19,002 nt of DNA from Chlorokybus atmophyticus (taxonomy: Eukaryota > Plantae > Mesostigma and Chlorokybus algae). Location: positions 1 through 19,002 of the forward strand of contig RHPI01001248.1 in the NCBI GenBank assembly GCA_009103225.1, in the 5' to 3' direction. The stretch's first letter is position 1; each line of letters opens with the position of its first letter. Position numbers and translations under genes: made by a program. Below the pieces are notes generated by a model. The model did not search any database, was not told where the DNA came from, and worked only from the letters and a program-made list of their open reading frames with translations. Shown here piece after piece: positions 2 to 16,479 of the stretch.

Positions 2-1564
2 ATCAAGTACAAGCCCGGTACGTCAAATGGTGTTGCTGACGCGCTGAGCCGGCTTAATGCAATTGAGGCACTCGCTCAAGTGCAACCCGAGTGGACCGAC
101 CAGATTCGGCAAGTGCTTTATGAAGACACGGAGGGTATGAAAGTGTTGCAAGAGCTGGAAAATACAGCTCCGGACACAAGTGGGCACTGGTCAATGCGCG
201 ACGGGCTGCTGTGGCACCATGAGCGCTTGTACATCCCCAACGTCGCGCATATCCGTGTGAAGTTGCTGAAGGAAGCTCATGACGTGCCCATTGCTGGTCA
301 CCAAGGGTTGGAAAGGACTTTGGCAAGCTTAAAACAGCGTTTTTACTGGCGAGAGATGCATCGCGATGTGCGCGACTACGTGGCGTTGTGCGACGCATGC
401 CAAAGGGTGAAGGCAAGCAACCAAAAGCCAGGTGGGTTGCTGCAACCTCTCCCTGTGCCATTGTCCAAGTGGGAGCAAGTTACCATGGACTTTATCACGG
501 GGCTACCAAAGACAAAAGAAGGGTACGACGCTATACTTGTGTTCGTCGATAAAACCAGCAAAATGGTACGCTTGGCACCGTGTAGTGAGTCTTGCACGGC
601 ACCGGAGGCAGCACGCTTGTTCGTGAAGCATGTATTTCGTTCTCATGGATTACCACGAAGCATTGTGAGTGATCGCGACCCGCGCTTTACAAGTAAGTTA
701 TGGGAGGCGCTGCATAGTGCACTGGGTACCACACTGAAGTTTAGCGCGGCATTCCACCCGCAAACTGATGGGCAAACGGAGCGGGCCAACCGTGTGATCG
801 AGGACATGCTGCGTTGCTACGTTAACGCGCGACAAGACAATTGGGAGGAGCTGCTTGAGTTGGTTGAGTTTGCGATCAACAACCACCACAATGCAAGCAC
901 AGGTGTCACTCCCTTCCTTATGAACTACGGGCAACATCCATTGACACCGTTGACGGCATGGACACCGCGACGACATGACGTGCGTGTGGAGGCAGCTAAT
1001 GACTTCCTTACAAAGTGCGCGGACATTAACAAGGCAGCTAGGGATGCGTTATTGGTGGCACAAAATCGGCAGAAGCAGTACGCGGACGCGCATCGCCGAC
1101 ACCTCACGTTTCAGGAAGGCGACATTGTGTTACTCTCCGCGAAGCACGTCCAGGTGCGTACGGGAGTTCGCAAGCTGAATGAACGCTGGTTGGGACCATT
1201 TAAGGTCAGCAAAGTTATCTCGGACGTGGCGTACAAGTTGGAGCTACCCGACACCATGCGTGTGCACCCCGTTTTTCACGTCTCCCTTCTGAAAGCATAT
1301 CGAGGACAACCGCCAGAAAGGCCACCCCCCGAAGTTGGCACGGACGGTGAACCCGAGTGGGAGGTAGAAGACATCCTTGGTGAGAAGTTTGTGCATGGCG
1401 TACGCAAGTTCTTAGTGAAATGGAAGGGCTATCCGTTGCATGAAGCATCCTGGGAGCCAGAGGCACACTTGACTAATGCTCAAGACGTTGTGCGTGCCTA
1501 TCTTGCTCGACGACAACCTCGCGAGCTTCGAGGACGAAGCTCACCTGGGGGGGGAGGAGTGTAA
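2..1564 (+). CDS. pol: Ty3/gypsy (chromovirus) Pol polyprotein, 3' part: end of RNase H, integrase, chromodomain; 5'-truncated by the window
   Basis: The frame is open from position 2 (IKYKPGTSNGVADALSRL, RNase H end). It shows the HHCC finger (HDVPIAGHQG...CDAC), DDE core (MDF, SDRD, QTERAN), GPY/F motif (RWLGPFKV) and a chromodomain (WEVEDILGEK...FLVKWKGYPLHEASWEPEAHL). The TAA stop at 1562-1564 lies inside the LTR. Confidence 0.96.
   Translation: MKYKPGTSNGVADALSRLNAIEALAQVQPEWTDQIRQVLYEDTEGMKVLQELENTAPDTSGHWSMRDGLLWHHERLYIPNVAHIRVKLLKEAHDVPIAGHQGLERTLASLKQRFYWREMHRDVRDYVALCDACQRVKASNQKPGGLLQPLPVPLSKWEQVTMDFITGLPKTKEGYDAILVFVDKTSKMVRLAPCSESCTAPEAARLFVKHVFRSHGLPRSIVSDRDPRFTSKLWEALHSALGTTLKFSAAFHPQTDGQTERANRVIEDMLRCYVNARQDNWEELLELVEFAINNHHNASTGVTPFLMNYGQHPLTPLTAWTPRRHDVRVEAANDFLTKCADINKAARDALLVAQNRQKQYADAHRRHLTFQEGDIVLLSAKHVQVRTGVRKLNERWLGPFKVSKVISDVAYKLELPDTMRVHPVFHVSLLKAYRGQPPERPPPEVGTDGEPEWEVEDILGEKFVHGVRKFLVKWKGYPLHEASWEPEAHLTNAQDVVRAYLARRQPRELRGRSSPGGGGV
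1547..1559 (+). other. Polypurine tract (PPT) of the LTR retrotransposon
   Basis: GGGGGGGGAGGAG lies directly before TGTAAC at 1560. Confidence 0.9.
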
Positions 1565-2710: not shown

Positions 2711-5700
2711 ATGCAAGCCTGGATTCAATCCCATCAACTCGTCCTTCAATCCCACTTGCTGATGGGCGCGGCGGCAATGCGGCATCAGTTTAACATGCAT
2801 GTTGGCCTATTGAATCCCGACATGTCCATTGGGGCAGTGGCGCATGATGTGCCCATGGCTCAAGAGCTCCGTGACGAGTCTGCCATCGAGGTTGGCGGGG
2901 AGAGTGCAGCCAATACCACCTTGTCAGCCCCCATGGCTTCCCCTGCTCCATGCAGCCCACTGGCCATTGAGGTAAGTCGCTGTCTTTTATGCTCGTGCCT
3001 TGGTAACAATGCGTCAGGCACTGCATAAGCTTATATTCGTCCTTTGCAACATTGTGAGCCATCTTATCCTGGGTCCTGTATACAGCCCCCCTTGCTGCAT
3101 GCACAAGTGGTCTCACCTGCAGCTCCTGCTCCCCTCCCAGCCAGAGCGCAACCACCTTCCGCGGCACCAGTCCTTCGTGCACTGCCATCTCCTCCACGAG
3201 CAGCACCGGTGATTGCGGGGCAACAATCCTTCTTGCCGCCACCGGCGAGACCACAGCACAATGCAACAACCGATGTGGCTTCTGCACCTACCTTACCCCA
3301 CCCGCTGCAAGTTGAAGCCGGCAGTCTGCCCCAAACTCAGGTACTTTATCAGTCACTGTGACTCTTGCCGTCCACAGTTGGACACACCATGTGAGTGCTG
3401 TATGCGCATGCAGCAGGGGTCACCACCTGCCAGCGAGTCATCAGAGGAGCTGGCCGCAACCCGCATACGGCCATCAGTCATGCTAGGTGGCCAGCTCGCC
3501 TCATGGGACCACTTCAATGCGCCAACGGATGGTAACTGCTTCTACCATTGTGTATTTCGCGCCAGGCCATCCATAGCGCAAAGTGTCCTGGATGATCACA
3601 AGTGCCCCAGCTCGAGCAGATTTTGGGCCATGCTGGACACCATGGACGACGACGGCAGGGGGCACACTCTCCGCAAAATCACCGCCAAGGCTGTCGATGC
3701 AGGCGTGGCGAGCAGAATCCTAGACTTCTGCAGAGCCACTGGTGCCGCGGGAGAGATGGCGCAGTATTACGACAAACTGCCTGCGACCATGTTGGCTGAT
3801 ATCAACTGCAACATTGACCTAGCCATGGCCAAGGTGCGACAGATCGTGCGGAGAAAAGATGTGTACGTCGAGCACCTGCAGATGACCATGTTTGCCAACA
3901 AGCTGGGCTTGTTGATTGGCTGCGTGACCGTTCAGCGCGAGCATGGGGAGTGGGTGCCACGGCCCGGCAGCGCAGTTTGGGTTGGAAATAAAGAAGCCCC
4001 CAACTCAGTCCTGGTGGTGGGCAACACTGCTCCTGATGAGCCAGAAGCACACTTTTGGCTCCTCAAGCCTGCAAGCACCGAACAGTGGTCGTGGCCTATG
4101 CATGAAGTGCCACCGGAGGTAACACACCTGATCGGAGAGTGGCGGAATGGCGTTGCCAATTCCCCGCTACCACCGGCTGTGACCCAGAGTGCTGCGCCAA
4201 CGCCTCAGGCCTCGCCTTCGTGTGCTAGGCAAGAAGTAGCCGAGTGTTCTGCACATCCTGCCTCCCCTCAACCACAGCCACATGCTCGCAATCCCAATTC
4301 AGCACCCTCCCTTCCTGCCGCGGAGACTCACTTGCCACCGCACTCTGACCATCCGGAGGCATCTCCATCAAGAAGCAGCTGTAGCTCGCCCTCTCCCTCT
4401 AAGCTTGCCACATTGATCCCAGCCTGTCTTGTTGGTAAAGAGATTGATCGAGGTGTCCTGAAAGCTGCGCTGAAAGACAAAGGCTTCATGCTCGACCTCA
4501 TGAAGCAACATGAGGTCGTGGAGGAACGGGAGGCAACCAACAAGCGCAAGGCTGTGGAGCAAGAAGATAACGCCTTACCTCCTCTGAGTGACAGTGCCAC
4601 GGAGAGCGCCTGCCAGGATGTGCAGGGTGACAAAAAAAAAAAGAAGAAGGTTGTTGGAACAAAGGACGCTGACAGGACCAAAAAAGGAAAGGTGAGGCAT
4701 CGTTACAACATTAGAAGAAGCACAGCGCCTTGAAGCCTCACTGGGGCTGACTGTGTGTCCTGAGTAGGCACAGGCGGGTTTACAGCGTCAAGTGGCTGCT
4801 CAGCATCGTCCAGAGAGACAGCCGGTGCGGCACGAGCTGCCTAAGCTCAAAGCACCGACGCGCAGACGCTTTGGGGGGCTGACTCGTAGTGCAAAGGAGT
4901 TGATCACCCTACAGTACGCCCAAGACGCGCTGCATCACCGCATGCGGCATGCCTCGAGGTGGGTGACGAAAGTTTGCAATAAGTGGGAGCAAACGCGGAG
5001 AATGCGGTCTAAACAGACCTCTGGGGATTGGCCGTGGTTGGAACCCATACACGATATGGCCATCCGTAGTACGTTGTTGCCCCTCGCCGTCCTCGATATG
5101 ATGGTGTTGTTGCTGCCGCAGCAACCCGGCAATGTGCAAGAGCTATCTGCGGAGCAGAACTTCGACCTGCTGCAGCAGATGTACCTGTCGATGTCGACTA
5201 ATGCGGGTCGAGATGTGTGCCACTACCTGAGCAAACATACTGGGTGGCAAGTAAAACCATTCGAGCTGTACTTGGCATGCTTTGGCTGGCAGTGGCTGTA
5301 TGTCATACGGCACGTCGAGCTGATTCTGTGGAAGCTCGAAGAAAATGACGATGCGGGGGAGTACACGAGTGACGACAGCCATGTCGAGGGCCTGGATGAA
5401 CGCATGCTGGACGAGACCACCAAGACCAGCAGGTGGTGTATGGCGGCAGATGGGCGTCAGGTGATCGAGCAGGCAGTGGAGCGTTATGCTGCGCCATTCA
5501 GATGGGAGTCGCTACGCCTGCGACGCGATAACAGAGTTTGGTGGCAGAGGCAGCTTGCACACCCGCGTGCACCATGTGTGCTGATTTGTCGCATTGAAGA
5601 GCCACCCCCCCCAGCGGATGGGGAGACGCCCTGTTGCAAGAAAGCGATGTGCCATGTCTGCATCATAGCACATCAGAAGACTGTGGCAAATAAATCAAAG

Positions 5701-5802
5701 AATCTACAAGCGTGTCCATTCTGCAAGCAACCTCACCCGTTTTGGTCGCCACGCCTGATGCAAGACGCCAACGTGTCGGCGGTGATTTGGCCCCCGCCTT
5801 GA
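2711..5802 (+). CDS. 4-exon gene, about 936 aa: Pro/Ala-rich N-terminus, OTU-like cysteine protease, basic NLS-like run, C-terminal RING-like finger
   Basis: Exons 2711-2971, 3086-3340, 3414(or 3417)-4691 and 4786(or 4774)-5802 join through phase-0 GT-AG introns (GAG|gtaagt, CAG|gtactt, AAG|gtgagg). OTU-like motifs are PTDGNCFYHCV and EAHFWLL; KKKKKK lies near 4632. The RING-like part is CVLIC-x13-CCKKAMCHVC-x17-CPFC. No internal stops after splicing. Confidence 0.7.
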
Positions 5803-6049
5803 TGCCAATTGTGCATGTATTGTAGTTTTGTGTTGGCTTCCAGTGAACCATGTAGGTACATGTATAGTTGCAGCATGGTGCATGGTGCACCAGATATCTG
5901 CTGTTTTAGAAGCATTGGCTGTACATGTGTATGATGACTGCCCGGCGCATGAGTCAGTGCATGGCTTGCATACCTCGCTGGTTTAGAGTGTGGTTGACAG
6001 CAACAAACTCGGACAGCGCTCTGGGTTCCATGGCATGACAGCACAGTAT

Positions 6050-6192
6050 TACTCTACGATCGTGGTAGTATGCCAGTATCCTTGTACTGTAGTACCATTA
6101 ACAGATGGAGTACCATTCATGTTGATGCAGTACCATGCATGGTACTGCAGTACCATGCATGGTACTGCAATAGCGTATAAGGTACAGTCGTG
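6050..6192. repeat. GTACCAT/ATGGTAC palindromic motif cluster (left)
   Basis: Several GTACCAT copies, including a perfect 44-bp palindrome at 6126-6169 made of two tandem GCAGTACCATGCATGGTACT units. Confidence 0.85.
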
Positions 6193-6212
6193 CTTCACTT
6201 GAAGTTTGACCC

Positions 6213-6261
6213 ATTTAGGGTTCGTAAGCTGGCAACCCTAAATTGATGCCCATACCCTAAA
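6213..6261. promoter_or_regulatory. Telo-box-like motifs upstream of the methyltransferase gene
   Basis: ATTTAGGGTT (6213-6222) and AACCCTAAAT (6234-6243) form a 10-bp inverted pair; ACCCTAAA follows at 6254-6261. The ATG is at 6305. Confidence 0.5.
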
Positions 6262-6639
6262 GTCTCGCTCAGTTTGTGGGCAGCCGTGCCGATTCCTATT
6301 TTGCATGATGTCGGCGGCAGCAGTTGAATCACCCTCACCTAGGAGACCATGATTGGTGTGCCCACAATGCAATGCGTACGTATGTGCCAATGGCCGTAGG
6401 CAGCAAACGCGAGCACACTTGACCGAATGCCAGCGAGTGCAGACAGTGTGCCACGGTTGTAGTGCTGCTTGCTGGCATCACACCACACACAATGTCGACG
6501 TGTTTGGCTGCCGCCTCGGCCAAGTGCTGTGCAAGGAACCCGAGTTTTTCCATTGCGTGCAGTGCGTGTGCGAATCGTGCTCGCGCTCATGCTTCGAGTG
6601 GCGAGGGGAACCCATGCGCTTCTTCACACCAATTGACGT

Positions 6640-6930
6640 GAAAGGACCATGAATGGTCTGTACCCTTGAACCGGGATTTTCCCCTGCCAAATGAATTCCG
6701 TGGACCATGTATGGTCGGACTGTCATTGACAGTCCGACCATACATGGTGTGAAGTTCATGTGAACGGTCCCATGTTTTTTGGGGGTCGCACCATGTATGA
6801 TGCGCAGTTCCACCAAGTTGTATGGACCATGCGTGGTCCGAACTGAACATGTAAACGAGGACCAAGGTCCATGCATATGAGTGATTATGTATGGACCATG
6901 CATGGCCCGAATTTACATGCAAACGTGGAC
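6640..6930. repeat. Left subterminal repeats, GGACCATG(C/T)ATGGTCC family
   Basis: TGGACCATGCGTGGTCCG at 6823-6840, a perfect 22-1-22 palindrome at 6704-6748, and many GGACC/GGTCC copies. Confidence 0.85.
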
Positions 6931-7689
6931 TAAGGATGGTTCTTGCATGTGAGTGAATATGCATGCGAAGTAGACCAGGTCTGGTCCACACCAGCCAACT
7001 GTGTTTGCAAAAAGAGAAACGCAAATGCATATTTTCATTGCATATATAATCAGCAAAAAACGCAACACTCTATGCCTATCAAGGCTAACTACACTACAGC
7101 CCCGTCCTTCGGACGCCGAGCTTGCGCCAGCGTTGTAGAGCACTTGAAAGGTCTGCGCAAATGTGACTATCATTGTGCAGGACTGTACACATGTGCGTGC
7201 CTGCGCGCGCATGCGTGCATATGATGTGGAACTGTTGGCGTATGTTGCATGGTATGTATTCGTGTGTGCAGAGCTGTGCAATGGTTTGCTACTATGCATT
7301 CATGTGCGTGGGCATGCGACATTGCATGCATGAGAGACAAAGCAGACCTTGCGTTGCCCGCACCTTGTTGGCGGTGACTCACAAGTTGGATTTGTGGCCT
7401 CGTGCTTCTCCACAGCTGGCCGGTGAGCAAGCCACGATGACACATCACTCGATTGCACCTGCTGAAAACTGTCTGCAGCTACACTGCACACGCGCATGTG
7501 TGAGTATGTGTGTATGTGTGTGCATGCTTTTAGCATGTATTTGACCGTCTACATGGCTGTTGAACAACTGAATTGATTGCGCACACGCATGTGCACAGCC
7601 TGCACAGATGCGTGCGTAAACATGTGTGTGCGTGCCTAGCAACCATTCGACTGGACTATTAGATGGTTGGCCACCTGACATTCCTCGAC

Positions 7690-9460
7690 AGTCCGCAGCC
7701 AACAGTCCTGTTGACAGGCCTCGACTGTCATTGACAGCCGAGGGCTGTCATTGACAGCTAAGGACTGTTGAAAGGACAGCCCTTCCCACAGCCCTCGGCT
7801 GTCAAGGTTGAGCGCGTGTTGTTGTGATGGTTGTTGTTGGTAGCAATTGCTGTTGTTGAGAGTGCTGATGATAACCCTCACTTGAGGTACCGTGTTGTGC
7901 ACATTGTGCAAACCAATACATACTAGGCACTTGTGCAATAACACACTTACAAACGTGCACGCAAACCACATGTACACCACGCATGCATACACACGCATTA
8001 CCTGTTGATGTTGTAGCCGAGGTTCGGTAGAGCGAGGGAGCGACAATACACCCTACCGGTGCACTTTGTGTGCTTTTCGAGAGCTCGGCTATATCAAAAC
8101 CGCAGAAGTGGCAAGCATAGATGTAGTATATTGTAGGGCCTGCACGCGTATGTACATGCAAGTAAGCGTGCGTGCGTGCGCAAGGGAGTGGGACTGTCAC
8201 TGTTTGTATGCACGCGCGGTACTGTGCGTAGGCTTGTGTGTGCATGAGTAGGAGCACAGTACTCACCTGCGACAGTGTGCGATAAGCCTCCTTGGCCTGC
8301 GCATTTGCCGTGCATGATGCGCAAACGCCAGCCAGAGTACAAACCTTTGCGCGCACCTTCAAGGCGCTGGATGCTTGGAACGACTGTCAACCACCAACAG
8401 TCGTAGACTGTCGGTTGTTGTTAGTGCTGTTGGAAGGACTGTCGACAACAGCGGAGGGCTGTCGAGGGAAGTGCTGTGGGATAGATAATTGACAGTCTCC
8501 GGCTGTCGGCAGCCAATAGTGGAAGGCTGCAGATTTCGTGGGAACGGCTGTGTTGGAGGGGCAGGGAGGAAGGTAAGTATAATGACAGGGGGAACGAGGG
8601 TGGGAGAGGGGAGCAAAACATAGAGAATACGCATGGAGGTGCCACATTACTTGTGCTTCAGCGAGTGTGCGCGTGCATGTACTTGCATGCCATGCAGTGC
8701 CACGCAGACACATGCAATCACACCCATGCGCATGTGTGCATGCGTGTCTCTGCGTGTGTGTGCGTGCATACATGTTTGTACAAGTACCTTCACGCTTATC
8801 GCCATTACTAAGTCGTCCTCCTTGCACATATGCCCTCACGCCGGCCGTGTATGTGCATACGCCTCGCCAGCAGCATTCATCACCCCGCTGCTTAGCATGC
8901 GCAGCCGAGTGAGCCTGCCCTGCGCGCCCAGCATATACACCTATGGAATGAAACGCAGAGGGGGTGAGCATGATTAGGCGAGCATGGATTACCTCTAGCT
9001 TACAAAGCTTATAAGCACACTCAGTCGCTGATTTTTTCATGCAATGGGAGTAGTAGTTGGCGCACTTAAGCTTGACTATTGCATTAGCATTGAAATACCA
9101 TTCAGCTTAATGTATGCAAGCAATGCACAGCATAACAATAGACAAGCAAACACATGTGTGACTGCTTGCACGAGGTGTGTATAAACCCTGCTTTGTGCAA
9201 GCAAGCAAGCTAGCTCGCCGAGTGCACACTAAGCTGAATGCATGCAGTTCAACAACGGCTGGACAGCATGAGTATGCTGCATACCTCCGTTGACTTGGCA
9301 ATAAGTTAGCAGCAAAGCATAAGAGCAAGCAAGCAAGCTTACCGGCTGAAGGTTTTAAGGAGCGGACACTCCAGCAGCAGTTTTTGCTGTCAACAGTCAT
9401 TCACTAGAGTAGCTAACCTTCCCAAGTGACAATCGAGGGCTGTCAACAGTGCGACTGTCA
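7690..9460. repeat. Three clusters of CTGTCA/TGACAG motifs (about 7690-7805, 8380-8510, 9385-9460)
   Basis: CGAGGGCTGTCA is identical at 7739-7750 and 9434-9445. GACTGTCATTGACAG is identical at 6718-6732 and 7723-7737. Confidence 0.7.
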
Positions 9461-9929
9461 ACATTGCAGCTGCAATTGTTGCTAACCATTTGTGATGCTA
9501 TGACAGCAGGCTGCAGCAACAGCTTCAATCACAGCATGGTCACCAACAACAGCGACATCAACGACAACAAGAACACTCTGATAACGGCAGCAGCAGGAGC
9601 CGCCGTTGCTGCAACCAAAGTAGCTGCTGTTACAGGTTACACATTAGCTCTTAAAACTTGACATCACAGCATTCACAATGGGGCATGCAGTGAACAACTG
9701 AACACCTTTACGCAACACCGCCGCCTCCAGCGCCGCCTCGCTCAGGGCAGCAGGCTGCTCCAGCACCTCCGCTGTCGGCGGTAGCATGTGGGTGCAGTTA
9801 CAAGCAGCCAACTGATTGTCTCCCCTGATAAGTCCAAGCACTGTGCATTGCTGACGTGTACAGCTGGCTACTCGTACTGATCCATGTGATCAGTACGAGT
9901 AGCAGCGTGTCACGACGGAGCAAGGGACG

Positions 9930-10300
9930 AGGGGAGCTCACCATGCATGGTTCGTACATTAGGGTTTGATGAGCCGCACCACGGACCAAAAGGCGCCATG
10001 CACGGTCTCTTAATCACGGAGTGCGGACCACGCAAGGTCCGTACACTAATTGACAGTCGGACCGGTAATATGCCTGGTCCGGCTGTGGACCATGCATGGT
10101 CCGGTTTTTCGCGATAATTCAGATCGGTTTTAAACCTGGTCCGGCCGCGCACCATGTCTGGTGCGCGACTGCGCACCAGGATTCGGGGCCCCGATCAGAC
10201 CAGGAACAGTCCGTCCCTCGCGGACCAGGCAATCCTGGCCCGCGAGGGACGGACCATGTATGGTCCGCGGGGTCCGTGGAAGGACCATACCTGGTCCCCA
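9930..10300. repeat. Right subterminal repeats, GGACCATG(C/T)ATGGTCC family
   Basis: TGGACCATGCATGGTCCG 10086-10103, CGGACCATGTATGGTCCG 10250-10267, a 21-4-21 hairpin at 10209-10254, and ATTGACAGTCGGACC 10049-10063 (14/15 match to 6725-6739). Confidence 0.85.
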
Positions 10301-11931
10301 AACATCAAGCCGTGTGCTTCACATGGACAACACCGGGACATGTGGTTAGTGGACAGGTGGTGGATGCTGTGGAGGTAATCCACAAGAGTGGACCGCGACG
10401 TATCACTGCATGTTATGTTGGGCGTATGCTTATTTCATGCATGTTGAAGCTGTTGTTGCATTCAGAGCAGTCTTGCACGGTGTGGGCGTGGGCAGTTCCA
10501 TTGCCTGGCCGCTGTAGAGGAGGCAGACCATCGACCGTTTGACAGCGCACTGCATTGGCTGCGGAACGCAGTTAAGTTGGGATGCGAGCAGCTGATCGGT
10601 GTGAGTGTCATGGTGCATTGGCCGCTGGATGGGGAATGGTATGCGGGCGTTGTGGAATCATTCAAGCAAGCGTCAGGTCAGCATCGCTTCGTGGCGTGCG
10701 AGATTGAGGACGCATCATATATGCATGGTGCAATGGAAAATGTCTTTGCAGGGCAGCACCGTATAGGATTCGATGACGGTGATCGACCACAAACCATCAA
10801 CTTCAAAGGGCACAACGTATTCGCGTACACATCAGTTGACGGGGCACGCCATGTTCTGCGCGCCGGAGGGCAAAACGTCAGTCGCAAAGTAAGCCCGGAC
10901 GGCATCATTGTTAGTCCCTGGCTAGCACCACGGCCAGCCTTGACCACATACACGCCATTTGACAACAAGCTGGGACGCACACGCAGACCAAGGGCACTCG
11001 ACCTATTCTGCGGCGGTGGCGGTGCCAGTGTCGGTCTATACCACGCAGGCTTTGACGTGACCGGGATGGACATAAGTCCCTCCTCTGAGTACCCGCTGCC
11101 CTTCATACACCGCGATGTATGCACCTTAAATGCAAGAGAGCTGAGCGAGTACAAGCTCATCTGAGCCAGTCCACCATGCCAGGCCTATTCAGGTGCTATC
11201 CCGGCACCTCAACGGGCGGCACATGGCACATCCTGGAGACACCAGGATATGATACCGCTCGTTCGACGTTTGCTGCTTGCAAGCCAGGTCAAGTTTGTGA
11301 TTGAGAATGTGCCAGGAGCAGCTTCCTCATTCAGACCCAATCTGTCCCTTTGTGGCACGATGTTTGGCCTATCAACTTTCCGACACCGTCTGTTTGAGAC
11401 ACAGCCAGTGGTAGCTACCCCACCAGCACGCTGCTCGCACGCGGGCAAGGCAGTTGGACTGCTATCGCCGCACCTGTCCGCTAGCGCGAAGAAGACAATC
11501 GTGACATCAAACGCGCCACAGCAGATGTACCCGGTCTATGGCCTTCCAAGCACCAGGGGCGGCATTGCTGCGTGGCAAACAGCGCTGGGAGTGCCATGGA
11601 TGACCTCGGCCGTTTCCATAGCGAATGCAGTTCCTCCCGCAATGGCGGAGTGCATAGGGCGTCTCATGCTTGAAACAATGGATATGCGCTGTGACTACCC
11701 TCCTGTGTCATGGAACTATGAGGCTTGAGTGTGGTGCACTGTATTGATGCTTAATGCCACACGGCGGACTGATTGTTGAATGTTGCATGGATCATTCGAT
11801 TGTGGTGACAGTTGTGCAGTGACAGCTGCCCGGTATTGTACACGTCCACATGCAAAAGTCTTAGCATACGATTAGCAATGCCTAACTGACTGATATGCTC
11901 CAAACTGAGAGTAGTGAGACAAGTACATGTG

Positions 11932-14900
11932 TCACGTGGAAGTGCAGTGAACGTTCACCCAATACTTGCCCTCTTGTACACGGGCGCTGTCCTTGTCAAA
12001 CATGGGGAGCAGCTGGACAATGCCTTTTACTTGCTCCAGAGTCACGACATCGAGATGTGGATCGCCTCGACGCTTTTCCCATTCCAGAGCGATGCACTTT
12101 GTGTCGCTCATCACATCCAGCTTTGTGTACCAGCGGACAAACACGACCTCCTTCCACACGCGCTCGCCGCTACCACCCCACACCACCACGCGCAGAAAAA
12201 GGAGTGCCTGAGCCCACCACGTCACGTTCACACCGTCCTCATCACCTTCCAACTCAAGTGTAGAGAACCAAGGCCGCCCATGGAACATCCCAGTTGCGCG
12301 CGCCATGCTGACTCCTGATGTCATGNACGCGCCATGCTGGCTGTTGATGTCATGTACACCGCTGCGCCTCCGTTCACCACGCGAACAGCACGCCACTCGC
12401 CGGCCAACTCCAGTTGTTCCCTCCTCAACCAGCTGTCCAGGGTGGCAGGCAGCTTGTCGGCGAATGGAGTCTTCAAGGCGACTTGGCGGCTACGCGCAGA
12501 TCCGCTCCAGTACGGGCTGGACTCCCTCCTTGTCAGCACATCCATCCGTAGCAACTTGTCCGTCTTCTCCATGACATTACAGCACTGCTGCCGCGCCTGC
12601 GCCATGACCGAGCGCATCTCGGGATCCACGACCATGCCATCCTCTCTCACATATTCCGCACAGCTCCATGCCTTCAGGATACGTGCCTGGTAGTCCCGGT
12701 TGTTGCCACCACGCGCCCACCGTTTGATATTTTGGGCGTGCGTCTGCTCCATGCGGTTGGCGCTGAACCAATCTGGGTGTCCACTGCTGACAATTGCCGG
12801 CCAAAAATGAGTGAGCTGATGCATCTTCTCAATCTTCCACCTGAGTTTTGTGCAGAGTATGACGACAGTAGCGGATGCAACATTGCAGCTTTGAAGGCAG
12901 CCAGCTCGTTGTTGGCTGTGGTCAGGGTCTCTCTTGTGTGTTCATGCGCCTTGAGCAACTTCTTGTTCCACTGGGCAAGCGATGCGGTAGCAATGGTGAA
13001 GAAATCGTCGCCCTCACTGTCGAGCAGCAAACCGTCTGCGAGGACCGGCAGCAGCTGCAGCACCGCCACTTTCTCCACCACCTGAAAGGAGTGGTCGGAC
13101 AAGGAGAAATCTTCTGTGCTTGTGGGTGCCTTGAAGTGCGAAACCCGCAGAGTCGCCTTGCATGCATTCAGCCTGTGCACATCTGCTCGTGAGCACGTGT
13201 TGTTGGCTTTTGTGCTCAGCACAAAAGCAACATCAAAGACGTGCCTGGCCTGCAGAATCTGTCTCGTGGACGGACGCATTCGTTCTTTCGCGGCGTCGTA
13301 CACAGCAGCAAGCAGGTGGTCAATGATGCCTCCCAGCACATGCATTGCGTCAGGGGCAAGACGAGAGTAGCAGTCAGCTCCCGGCACCCGCGACTGTCGC
13401 CAACCCCACANCCCCCACAGTGCATTCTATTGCCAAACCACATTGCCTGGTTTCACGGAAAGCCATTCATCCTCACGAATGCCGATAATTTGACCATTAC
13501 CTCCTCGACATGCATGGAGTGCTGCTCTTTGAAAGCCTTGGCTGTCTGGCGTGCATTCCTAACACCGTTATGCAGGTCTGCCCGCAGCTGGCGTATTGCT
13601 GGTGTGTAGAAGGCCTCGGTTCTCAATTCCCGGTCCTCATCCATCTCCAACAGATCTGATTTGGTGACGAGACAAACATCGCAAGGATGTCGTGTTTGGT
13701 TGCCCGACACAGTGCGTGCGAGTGTGGCAGTCTCCTACAACACGACAAACTCTGATGTTCTACTGACAACATCCTCCATGCACTGTTTGCTGGCAGGCTG
13801 CATCCGGTTTCAACCATTCATGCCCACTACCTGCAAATCGCTGATGTAGTTGGCAAGCGCGGGAAACACACGACGCTCGATGCCATTCGGGTCGATGAGC
13901 TGCAGACCTTCCCAACTCGCCCGCTTCACATCCCCTAACACTACATTCAAAGCGTCATGAAAAATCTCACGTTTCCGAATGGAGAACGATTCCTTGCCCT
14001 GCGCCCAGGTGGGATGCCCGGCCACTGCGTGAACCACCGGCAGAAGCGCTATCATAACAACCCCCATGTTGCTAGCATACATGTCCCAACTGTAGTTGGC
14101 AAGCGATGCCATCAGAGGGTAGCCAGAGCGCTTGCCCGCGCTGTCCAGCGTGGTCTTGTCACTGTACAGAATGGCAGGCGCCAAGTAGGACGCTTCCCCC
14201 ACCTCTCTCCTCAAATCCACCTCCACATCCTTCCACCAATCGCCCGTGGAAGGATGGCCAAAGCTGTGCTCGTCACCAATGTACTGGAGATTGAAGCCAT
14301 TGGCGGCATGTGGATTGCCATACAACCGCGCGAGCCATACCTGCTCCGACCAAGAGCATTACTTACTATGCTGGCCTCAGAATAGATACTGCATCGATAC
14401 TGCATTAGGTACTGCATTTCACAGACCTTGGCCGGCATATATGTGACGCAGATGTCCTGATCCTCAGGGTCTCCAGGCTTGCGAAGGTCAGCCGTCACAT
14501 AGTTCTGATACGGCAGCACACTCGCATGTGCATATGTGACATGGCTCTTATGGTTGAAGCACATGCACCGCACACCGTGAACACACCTCAGACTGAGAGA
14601 AAGCAATCGTAGTCCGGAGGTAGCTGGCCGCATGCACACCGGTCTCCCACTGGAGCTCTTCCGTCAGGAAGTGTGCATTTCGGATGCACTTGGTGATCCG
14701 CCCCATGTCGGAGGCCGACAGGCCTTGGCCGTTGTTGCACCGCACGAATGCCACTGCCAGAGCATGCTCCGAGCCATACCACCTGGATTCCGACGCGTGC
14801 GAAGGGACGCCTCCACTTCCATGTTGGCGTGCCACAGGTTTCTCAGGCACACGCACACATCGAAAGCCCTCGTTCACTTCCTCCTCCTCCTGTTGCTGCT

Positions 14901-15111
14901 ATGCATGTGTCTCCTGGAGGAATCCTTCAGCATCAAGCATGTAAGCATCCTGGATCAAACTCCCCGGTTCAACATGACCCGCATCGTACTGTAATGGACG
15001 CTGGCCAACATACAGCTTGATTTGCTTGCACACCCTGCTGCTAATAATGTGCATGTAGACCGAGCTGCGTGTGGCGAAGCGCATGTGGCAATACGGACAA
15101 AGGACTCCCAT
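11932..15111 (-). pseudogene. Plavaka-type (CMC/EnSpm-related) DDE transposase gene, about 910 aa reconstructed, disrupted
   Basis: Exons 15111-14587, 14504-14427, 14340-13831, 13734-13501 and 13426-11932 join through phase-0 GT-AG introns. Motifs: N-terminal CPYC-x12-H finger, LYGNP, HPSTGDWW, ILYSDKT (D1), YISDLQE (D2), HPCDVC, APDAMH, KMHQLTHF...SANRMEQTH (E), and C-terminal FHGRPW...FVRWY...VKGIVQLLP. Lesions: TAG at 14899-14901, a 1-nt frameshift near 12840, and a 29-nt duplication at the N (12326). Confidence 0.88.
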
Positions 15112-15180
15112 ATCTCACTACTAACGTCGACACAGGTGTCGCCAATGTAACCTGCATCATATCCAGCAACACGCACACCC

Positions 15181-15225
15181 GCCGCCGCCGCCGCCGCCAC
15201 CGCCACCGCCACCGCTACCGCTACC
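15181..15225. repeat. GC-rich simple repeat (GCC)n/(GCCACC)n/(GCTACC)n
   Basis: Read directly; lies upstream of the transposase ATG. Confidence 0.8.
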
Positions 15226-15271
15226 CTTGCATGCCAGAGCCGGGAAACTTGGCCGCCAGTCACTGGCTCCG

Positions 15272-15470
15272 TCGTACCATTATAATGGTACGATCGAGCC
15301 ATTGCACGTCCAGGGTGAGTCTCTGGATATTTTTATATACATATATATTCTGATTGAACCGTTTCAATGGTACGCAGATGCCTTTGCCAAAAGGTATAGG
15401 CATTGTACAAAGGTACCATTGAAATGGTACCTTTATACAATGGCAATGGCAGTTCGTACCATTGACAACT
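15272..15470. repeat. GTACCAT/ATGGTAC palindromic motif cluster (right)
   Basis: Perfect 22-bp palindrome TCGTACCATTATAATGGTACGA at 15272-15293; a 20-2-20 hairpin with one mismatch at 15401-15442; further GTACCATT copies. Confidence 0.85.
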
Positions 15471-16010
15471 CTGGCAATGTCAGTCCCCCTGCGCATGAAA
15501 ACACCATTGATAGCTCCGCCAAGCTATGCCCTTACAGGGGCGTGATGCCGAGGGTATGTGGCGTTTGGAAGATCGTTGGCGGCGCTGCCAGGGGCGTAGT
15601 GGGCATTGTGGTCGAGGTCCGGGATGAATTCCATGTTCGCACAGGGCGGGCAGGGTGCCGGAGGGGTGTCCTCGGTGTCAAACCCCACCAAGACTACCAA
15701 GGGCACATCCAATGACAACAGTGACTCGGGCGATATCTTACAGGGCTCCCCCTCCGAGTGGGCAAAGGCACACCACAATATTGCCTCTAAGAAAATCCGA
15801 CCCACCAGCAGCTGCGACCACGGCGACATGATTGAAGGGACCAAACAAGACTGGCATAACCAAGGTGGGTTACGATGCACTGTCAATGCCACATGCTAGG
15901 GTTCTTTTATCTTGCACATGCACAGCCTCAAGTATCTTGCACTTGACATACATTGTCAATACGACATGCACACCCTCATGCACAACCTCCAGTGTCATGC
16001 ACATGAACAG

Positions 16011-16479
16011 CATGACCAATCTCGCAAATGCACAGCCTATTTCTACTTGCGGGAGCTCACAAGTCGCAAAAGAGAAGCTGCGGAGTCAAACGAACGGGTA
16101 ATCTATGACCTAGTTTAATGTTTCCAGCGGTAATTAAGCAGTATGCTTGCAGATTGCCATGTTGGTCAGAGTGAACCAAGAGCAGCGCGGCAGGCTGACT
16201 GTCTGCCTGGCGGAGTGCAACAAAGCGGAAGACGAGGTAAGCGTGTGTATGCTGATGGGCTAGTCCTCTGGCAGCACGCCACTCTTACAGCATTACCAAA
16301 TGCAGGTGGTCACTCTCAAAGCGACCATCAAGCGCATGCGCGTGCACGGCGAGGCGCTGACATTCAAGCTGAAGGACGAAGTAGCCGCTGTACTGTCAGC
16401 GAGCGAGGCAGCGGATGAAGATGACTCCGGCGTTGAAGCAGAAGACTCGTCGGAGGAGGAACAGGAGGAGGGGGTTTGA
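16011..16479 (+). CDS. 3' exons of a small spliced gene, probable coiled coil plus acidic tail; 5' end unresolved, possibly pseudogenic
   Basis: Exons 16011-16097, 16153-16236 and 16306-16479 join in phase 0 (CGG|gtaatc, GAG|gtaagc) to give HDQSRKCTAYFYLRELTSRKREAAESNER-IAMLVRVNQEQRGRLTVCLAECNKAEDE-VVTLKATIKRMR...DEDDSGVEAEDSSEEEQEEGV*. An upstream donor lies at 15865. Confidence 0.6.

Follow-up and report, generated by a model that had tools for sequence, protein, structure and literature searches.

EnSpm transposons are defined by CAC..GTG termini and 3-bp target-site duplications (TSDs); CA..TG ends and TSDs of 2-5 bp are common to the CMCT clade (PMC12730594). The cis-determinants of CACTA elements are reiterated direct and inverted subterminal motifs that diverge between subfamilies (PMC2613891). 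Plavaka elements belong to the CMCT clade and are known from fungi, red algae and streptophyte algae (for the last, PMC13519894). In fungi, PlavakaA ends in TGT..ACA with a 2-bp TSD and PlavakaB in CATCA..TGATG with a TSD of 2-3 bp (PMC12730594). Plavaka elements that carry epigenetic cargo genes have also been described (PMC12730594; bioRxiv 10.1101/2025.02.11.637652).

We analysed a window of 19,002 nucleotides (the whole stretch of DNA under study, contig RHPI01001248.1 of Chlorokybus atmophyticus) in which a methylase gene appears to be split by an insertion. We estimate a probability of roughly 0.7 that this insertion is a 3,692-bp non-autonomous CACTA/EnSpm-like (CMC/CMCT) cut-and-paste element lying in a Plavaka-borne methylase gene.

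Ends, repeats and interior of the insert

The features of the putative element are as follows.

6622..6624, forward strand: left TSD copy, CTT; identity with the right flank goes on through CACA to 6628
6625..10316, unstranded: inserted non-autonomous CACAC...GTGTG element of 3,692 bp, delimited by termini, terminal inverted repeats (TIRs) and flanks
6625..6658, forward strand: left TIR, 24/34 against the right end, CACAC perfect
6644..6987, unstranded: left subterminal cluster of GGACCATGNATGGTCC palindromes and half-sites (7 half-sites)
9983..10297, unstranded: right subterminal cluster with the GGACCATGNATGGTCC palindrome (11 half-sites)
10283..10316, forward strand: right TIR, terminating in GTGTG, from inverted comparison with the left end
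10317..10319, forward strand: right TSD copy, CTT, as read

Read directly, the left boundary is CTT followed by CACACC... (6622/6625) and the right boundary is ...CCGTGTG followed by CTT (10316/10319), just where a first-pass annotation of this DNA had placed the two ends. The ungapped inverted match that it reported between them was recomputed at the same value, 24 of 34 positions, with the outermost five bases perfect and the match halting exactly at both termini. Among 1.52 million window pairs located 0.5-6 kb apart and sharing a 3-bp flanking repeat, the 6625/10316 pair has the top score and is the only one with at least 24 matches. When the flank condition is dropped, 24/34 is reached by 16 of 86 million pairs, representing about six distinct places, and matching flanks are found only at 6625/10316. 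An inverted match of 24/34 is not rare in this repeat-rich window, and the palindrome itself supplies much of the match of the element.

The claim of a 3-bp TSD holds in part. CTT is present on both sides of the one insertion seen, but the direct repeat is actually 7 bp (CTTCACA at 6622-6628 and 10317-10323) and the TSD boundary is for that reason formally ambiguous. The ends are symmetric only under the 3-bp reading, so the length of the TSD is deduced from this symmetry.

The subterminal palindromes previously described as common to both ends are confirmed by the clusters at 6644-6987 and 9983-10297. Allowing up to two mismatches, the 16-bp palindrome GGACCATGNATGGTCC yields 20 strand-hits compared to 0.09 expected; it is repeated only within about 360 bp of each element end, and the outermost copy is 19 nt from either terminus, in symmetric register. 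GGACCA half-sites number 7 in the left cluster and 11 in the right; the central 2.9 kb has none, and the 15 kb of the window outside the element have 5. All 18 half-sites of the element are thus found at most about 360 bp from its ends, and the motifs are reiterated in both orientations near both ends as in CACTA/EnSpm.

No Pfam domain was found in the ORFs of 6625-10316, and a search of the insert for transposase remnants or for likeness to the rest of the window found neither. The insert does not encode a CMC-type DDE transposase; the gene of a Plavaka transposase, which is CMC-related, adjoins it. Because the interior has no recognisable coding capacity, we read the insert as a non-autonomous CACTA/EnSpm-like (CMC/CMCT) element. 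When metagenomes were scanned for exact occurrences of the element's end pattern, no match was returned.

The insert resembles non-autonomous CACTA/EnSpm elements such as dSpm/I of maize and Tgm of soybean: its termini are CAC...GTG, its TIRs are short and imperfect and its target duplication is probably 3 bp, a motif recurs in direct and inverted orientation up to a few hundred bp from either end, it lacks a transposase of its own and it is inserted into a gene (PMC2613891, PMC12730594). It differs from them in its termini, which are CACAC and not CACTA (CAC is present, while the canonical TA at positions 4-5 is absent), and in its subterminal motif, a 16-bp perfect palindrome compared to a 12-bp asymmetric motif in CACTA elements. 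Its host is a streptophyte alga and its target the cargo gene of another transposon, which also sets it apart.

The putatively interrupted methylase gene

The predicted parts of the gene are given below.

6353..6624, forward strand: exon 1 part a, a Cys-rich (zinc-finger-like) ORF without in-frame ATG
10320..10374, forward strand: exon 1 part b, which finishes the Phe codon and continues for 18 codons to a GT donor at 10375
10375..10591, forward strand: predicted 217-nt GT...AG intron, phase 0 at both ends, read from the sequence
10592..11728, forward strand: exon 2, a Tudor-like region and a small phage-type C5 DNA methyltransferase (motif I FCGGGG, PCQ, ENVPG)
11162..11164, forward strand: in-frame TGA, a nonsense lesion replacing the conserved His before ASPPCQ

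Positions 6353-6622 form 90 open codons, open right up to the insertion point, where the TT to the left of the insertion and the C to its right make a complete Phe codon. Positions 10321-10374 correspond to TWTTPGHVVSGQVVDAVE and are followed by GTAAT. In-silico removal of the insert brings the Cys-rich ORF in frame with the 18 codons ending at the GT donor, which would join in phase 0 to the Tudor/C5-methyltransferase exon; the junction protein reads ...MRFF followed directly by TWTTPGH..., and the restored gene spans about 1,685 bp. The earlier claim that excision restores one continuous frame running through a phase-0 intron into the Tudor exon is borne out, with the caveat that about one in three junctions would be open by chance, since the frame on the right stays open over 10096-10542 in any case. 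Likewise supported is the presence, between the Cys-rich ORF and the Tudor/methyltransferase exons, of a CACTA-like transposon with a TIR, a probable 3-bp TSD and subterminal repeats. That these two form one gene is partly supported, on the basis of structure and not of homology.

The exons were searched separately, not as one joined protein. For the Cys-rich ORF, a word search returned no candidate, no Pfam family was found and the ESM Atlas gave NOA36 with a score of 0.75, below threshold. In word and full representative searches, the Tudor/methylase ORF matched only small phage-type or tandem-duplicated C5 methylases (motif I) and unrelated Tudor-repeat proteins; no paralogue was found and thus no N-terminus for comparison. 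A scan of viral contigs identified one contig with methylase motif I only and nothing for the Cys-rich ORF, and a scan of metagenome contigs for related loci gave nothing.

While the frame is continuous, excision would not reunite a working gene. The TGA at 11162-11164 stands for the His of the conserved IHASPPCQ motif, just ahead of the catalytic PCQ. The start of the Cys-rich ORF is also defective, with the ATG at 6349 one base out of frame and no ATG in frame. Because of the nonsense codon and the defective start, this copy of the methylase gene is dead for other reasons besides the insertion, whatever the order of events.

Transposons can be spliced out as introns, as is the case for Ds and dSpm in maize genes. 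Here the downstream nonsense codon is present anyway and splicing is predicted from sequence, which distinguishes this gene from the maize cases; the resemblance lies in an in-phase candidate donor, GTGAAA at 6638, which is 14 nt inside the insert and in phase 0. Splicing from this donor to the acceptor of the Tudor exon (10591/10592) would in principle be possible and would remove nearly the whole insert.

The putative surrounding Plavaka unit

Three features are assigned to the outer unit.

6092..6165, unstranded: GTACCAT palindromes, left subterminal cluster of the outer unit
13813..14358, reverse strand: core part of the Plavaka transposase, identified by Pfam PF18759 (E = 1.7e-22), with further coding pieces within 11935-15114
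15274..15462, unstranded: GTACCAT palindromes, right subterminal cluster of the outer unit

We read the methylase gene as cargo of a larger Plavaka transposon and the insert as an ordinary nested insertion. A sister palindrome, GTACCATGCATGGTAC, is found at both edges of the methylase and Plavaka unit. GTACCAT occurs 13 times compared to 2.15 expected, with 12 of the 13 in two clusters bracketing the gene pair. The palindrome of the outer unit is the variant GTACC...GGTAC, as opposed to GGACC in the insert, and the sister relationship of the two suggests that insert and outer unit are of related lineage. When 5600-6340 was compared with 15100-16300 in an ungapped search for TIRs and TSDs, no CAC-ended pair flanked by a 3-bp TSD came up, and gapped alignment revealed only loose inverted similarity between about 6010-6184 and 15338-15518.

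A Plavaka transposase gene is found 2-5 kb from the insert, in a unit with the sister palindrome at its edges. The insert differs from Plavaka in having no transposase gene, and from the fungal A and B types in its CACAC..GTGTG ends with a probable 3-bp TSD. The suggestion that the neighbouring transposase mobilised the insert is unproven: the palindrome of the Plavaka unit is GTACC, not GGACC, and no CACAC ends were found for the unit.

Proposed origin and alternatives

In En/Spm, the subterminal repeats are the binding sites of TNPA. By analogy, we hypothesize that the palindromes of the insert are putative binding sites of the transposase or of an accessory DNA-binding protein. A CMC-type transposase supplied in trans would have cleaved at the CACAC ends and opened the target with a 3-bp stagger; its supplier may have been a sister subfamily of the neighbouring Plavaka unit, not the neighbour itself. 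The element would have inserted at CTT in the Phe-Phe codons, towards the end of exon 1 in the Cys-rich/Tudor/C5-DNA-methyltransferase gene, parting a 90-codon zinc-finger-like head from the Tudor-methyltransferase body.

Alternatively, the transposon may be real and lie in an intron or other non-coding DNA, the Cys-rich ORF being separate or spurious and the in-frame join a coincidence. The openness of the right-hand frame makes such a coincidence conceivable, and the Cys-rich ORF, for which we found neither homologue nor Pfam family, has no ATG of its own in frame. Against this, that ORF stays open up to the very point of insertion, and the 18 codons run into a good GT donor whose phase suits the Tudor exon, so that we consider this explanation unlikely. 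It is still harder to accept that there was no single insertion, and that 3 kb of unrelated DNA came to lie by chance between two palindrome-rich fragments from the ends of different elements, or through a local rearrangement. The interior is indeed mosaic and unrelated to the ends, with inverted repeats of its own (7695-7730 versus 9427-9462, 25/34) and TGACAG...CTGTCA palindromes, yet the register of the termini and first palindromes agrees between the two ends, both flanks have the same sequence and the host frame is exactly restored.

The seven identical bases of the flanks could also denote a superfamily with 7-bp TSDs (Kyakuja, hAT7 or P-like), with CTTCACA as the TSD and 6629-10316 as the element; Kyakuja combines 7-bp TSDs and CA..TG ends with no TIRs (PMC12730594). 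Such an element would begin with CCAAT instead of CA, its outermost palindromes would be at unequal distances from the two ends (15 nt and 19 nt), and the perfect CACAC/GTGTG pairing would be left unexplained. No transposase of these superfamilies was detected in the window, and we regard this reading as highly improbable. The arrangement of Kyakuja and hAT7, a 7-bp TSD directly outside CA..TG, was rejected for the CCAAT start and the asymmetric ends.

If the insert is a nested CACTA/EnSpm-like element, its value is mainly for annotation, accounting for a Cys-rich ORF and a 'headless' Tudor-methyltransferase 3.7 kb apart. On that reading, the locus represents neither two genes nor a novel architecture. 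More speculatively, and with considerable doubt, G[G/T]ACCATGNATGGT[C/A]C may be the subterminal signal to which protein binds in a streptophyte-algal branch of the Plavaka/CACTA clade. One position of the half-site would then tell the subfamilies of this branch apart, the insert having GGACC and the methylase-carrying Plavaka unit GTACC. In that case the insert would provide the first complete end signature of this branch, combining CACAC...GTGTG with a 3-bp TSD and an outermost palindrome set 19 nt in from either terminus; neither fungal Plavaka type has this signature. The first-pass annotation had suggested that mobilisation by the adjacent transposase would reveal the end signature of these elements; for fungi, those of Plavaka and related EnSpm are already published (PMC12730594).

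With a GGACC-type insert next to a GTACC-type Plavaka unit, the locus gives a hint of the way in which sister subfamilies come to differ in their subterminal recognition sites. This diversification is already a known theme in CACTA elements, and the palindromic site is unusually clean here. The locus leaves the knowledge of these transposon families unchanged and raises no new question. For cataloguing the family in the Chlorokybus atmophyticus genome, the search pattern is CACAC, 14 nt, then GGACCATGNATGGTCC.

Ends of the insert and their subterminal palindrome

The insert spans 3,692 bp (6625-10316), starts with CACAC and finishes with GTGTG, and its ends are present where the first-pass annotation had quoted them. 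Comparison of the two ends bears out the proposed terminal inverted repeat (TIR) with CAC...GTG termini: 24 of 34 positions match without gaps, the outermost five bases are perfect and the inverted match halts exactly at both termini. CTT abuts the insert directly on either side. The identity between the flanks extends to seven bases (CTTCACA at 6622-6628 and 10317-10323), and the length of the duplication therefore cannot be read from a single copy. The target-site duplication (TSD) of 3 bp claimed earlier is the only reading that gives symmetric ends, with the first palindrome beginning 19 nt past the left terminus and the last finishing 19 nt short of the right one.

Of the position pairs in the window that lie 0.5-6 kb apart with a matching 3-bp flank (1.52 million), the insert end pair gives the best inverted match and is the sole one scoring at least 24. 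When the flank condition is dropped, 16 of 86 million pairs score at least 24/34, at about six places, several within the insert itself. Such a score is thus not rare in the window and the TIR score is to be weighed cautiously. Given the two palindrome clusters described below, we estimate, rather than compute, a chance of about 1 in a thousand for five inverted and three direct bases in the same register just outside them.

The strong signal for the insert is the palindrome rather than the TIR score. With up to two mismatches, GGACCATGNATGGTCC gives 20 strand-hits compared to 0.09 expected, a number that no shuffle approached. The left cluster (6644-6987) contains 7 copies of the half-site GGACCA and the right one (9983-10297) contains 11, against none in the central 2.9 kb of the insert and 5 elsewhere in the window (15 kb). 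These hits and the two end clusters confirm that the subterminal palindromes are common to both ends, as previously noticed.

CACTA/EnSpm elements are characterized by CAC...GTG termini, 3-bp duplications and subterminal motifs repeated in both orientations (PMC2613891, PMC12730594), and the CMCT clade at large has CA..TG ends with 2-5-bp duplications (PMC12730594). The insert shares the terminal and subterminal-repeat features and, on the 3-bp reading, the TSD of dSpm-type defective CACTA elements; unlike CACTA elements, it has CACAC in place of CACTA at its termini. The insertion is genuine: a nested transposon of an ordinary, known kind. We assign a probability of roughly 0.7 to a CMC-like insertion; in our reading the element is a non-autonomous one of the cut-and-paste type.

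We found no Pfam domains in the insert ORFs, and apart from the short motif the insert resembles nothing else in the window at the nucleotide or translated level. The interior is rich in repeats: TG/CA-rich tracts as well as palindromes of a second family, TGACAG...CTGTCA. These palindromes make up the highest-scoring inverted-repeat pair of the window (7695-7730 versus 9427-9462, 25/34) and recur at 7712-7804, 8446-8508 and 9427-9445. The pair may correspond to a further nested element or to structural repeats within the insert.

Reading frame and state of the split methylase gene

The first-pass annotation had proposed that excision of the insert restores the frame of a methyltransferase gene. 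Codon reads show that its frame arithmetic and splice phases are correct. The Cys-rich peptide has 90 open codons at 6353-6622, a Phe codon is formed across the insertion from TT (6623-6624) and C (10320), and TWTTPGHVVSGQVVDAVE is read from 10321-10374, followed by GTAATC. Behind a predicted acceptor at 10590-10591, the following exon starts in phase 0 (...CAG|CTG ATC GGT..., LIGVSVMVHWPLDGEWY). This exon extends to 11728. It codes for a small C5 DNA methyltransferase carrying motif I, PCQ and ENVPG, as well as for a Tudor-like segment; residues 3-48 of ORF 10577-11164 match stretches of multi-Tudor proteins assigned Tudor by Pfam. With the insert removed, the gene measures about 1,685 bp, counted from the ATG (6349) through to the stop (11728).

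While the frame is restored locally, the gene is not. An in-frame TGA at 11162-11164 falls exactly at the His position of ...IHASPPCQ in the relatives, just ahead of the catalytic Cys residue in the methyltransferase. Because this TGA replaces a conserved His and homology carries on in the same frame on either side, the methylase copy is a pseudogene independently of the insertion. At the 5' end (6340-6375), the frame of the Cys-rich ORF is closed by a TGA at 6350-6352; the sole nearby ATG (6349) is one base off that frame and the ORF lacks an in-frame ATG, which suggests a putative 1-nt frameshift at the start of the ORF in this copy. Thus excision repairs the frame only locally.

With exons searched one by one and the pieces not joined, word search returned no relatives of the Cys-rich ORF, and only phage-type methylases were recovered for the Tudor/methylase ORF among 5.8 billion and 1.84 billion proteins. 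Scans of viral and metagenome sequences gave nothing save one viral contig matching methylase motif I only. The nearest database relatives of the methyltransferase (proteins P0013, P0014 and P0084) are proteins in which the same small C5 methylase is present twice in tandem, and none of the three has a Tudor or Cys-rich head. We give a low probability to a genuine element sitting in an intron or non-coding DNA instead of the coding exon.

A possible phase-0 splice donor, GAC|GTGAAAGG (6635-6645), is located 14 nt into the insert. Some maize Ds/dSpm insertions are spliced out. Judging from sequence, the predicted donor could join the Tudor-exon acceptor (10591/10592) and remove nearly all of the insert.

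The outer Plavaka unit and the possible source of the transposase

Features outside the insert and the methylase gene
80-1564, plus strand: Ty3/gypsy chromovirus integrase (Integrase_H2C2, rve, SH3_Tf2-1 and Chromo domains), running towards the left window edge
3213-4733 and 4792-5802, plus strand: two long open frames of 506 and 336 codons, no Pfam match
13813-14358, minus strand: Plavaka transposase (PF18759, E = 1.7e-22), facing the methylase gene tail to tail

A C(2)C and a D-x-MH motif are found in other coding pieces of the transposase, and the whole is distributed over at least six frame segments, through introns or decay. Single N bases are present at 12326 and 13411, inside the transposase region. 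A sister palindrome, GTACCATGCATGGTAC, occurs with its variants in clusters on either side of the methylase and transposase pair. GTACCAT occurs 13 times compared to 2.15 expected, with 12 of the 13 in 6092-6165 and 15274-15462, and the clusters include GTACCATGCATGGTAC twice and 18-nt GTACCATTNNAATGGTAC forms. These clusters probably represent subterminal repeats belonging to an outer transposon. Since sister palindromes bracket the gene pair, the methylase gene is the cargo of a Plavaka-type unit of about 5.7 kb, with the 3.7-kb element nested within. The search for termini of the outer unit gave no CAC-ended pair flanked by a 3-bp duplication, and gapped alignment of its edges gave loose inverted similarity only. 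Plavaka has been reported throughout Archaeplastida, streptophyte algae included (PMC13519894), and red algae are reported to contain giant Plavaka elements with methylase-type cargo (bioRxiv 10.1101/2025.02.11.637652).

The insert and outer-unit palindromes share 14 of their 16 positions, with one difference per half-site (GGACC versus GTACC). The adjacent CMC-family transposase had been put forward as one that could have mobilised the insert; this is unlikely for the neighbouring copy, given that its palindrome has GTACC and not GGACC. Rather, the half-site difference suggests that a sister subfamily may have supplied the transposase, consistent with the way subterminal motifs are known to differ from one CACTA subfamily to another (PMC2613891). 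In fungi, Plavaka elements end in TGT..ACA with 2-bp TSDs or in CATCA..TGATG with 2-3-bp TSDs, and CAC..GTG ends with 3-bp TSDs are seen in the EnSpm relatives of Plavaka (PMC12730594); the insert ends fit neither published Plavaka type. That some Plavaka-lineage transposase mobilised the insert is plausible, with somewhat less than even odds.

Related half-sites are also found just left of the outer unit (5840-5995), as GAACCATG and as TGGTGCATGGTGCACCA at 5876-5892. Also present is a GTGTG (5987-5991), with GTTGAC after it. No left end pairing with this GTGTG was found; the region may be the right end of another CACAC-type element to the left.
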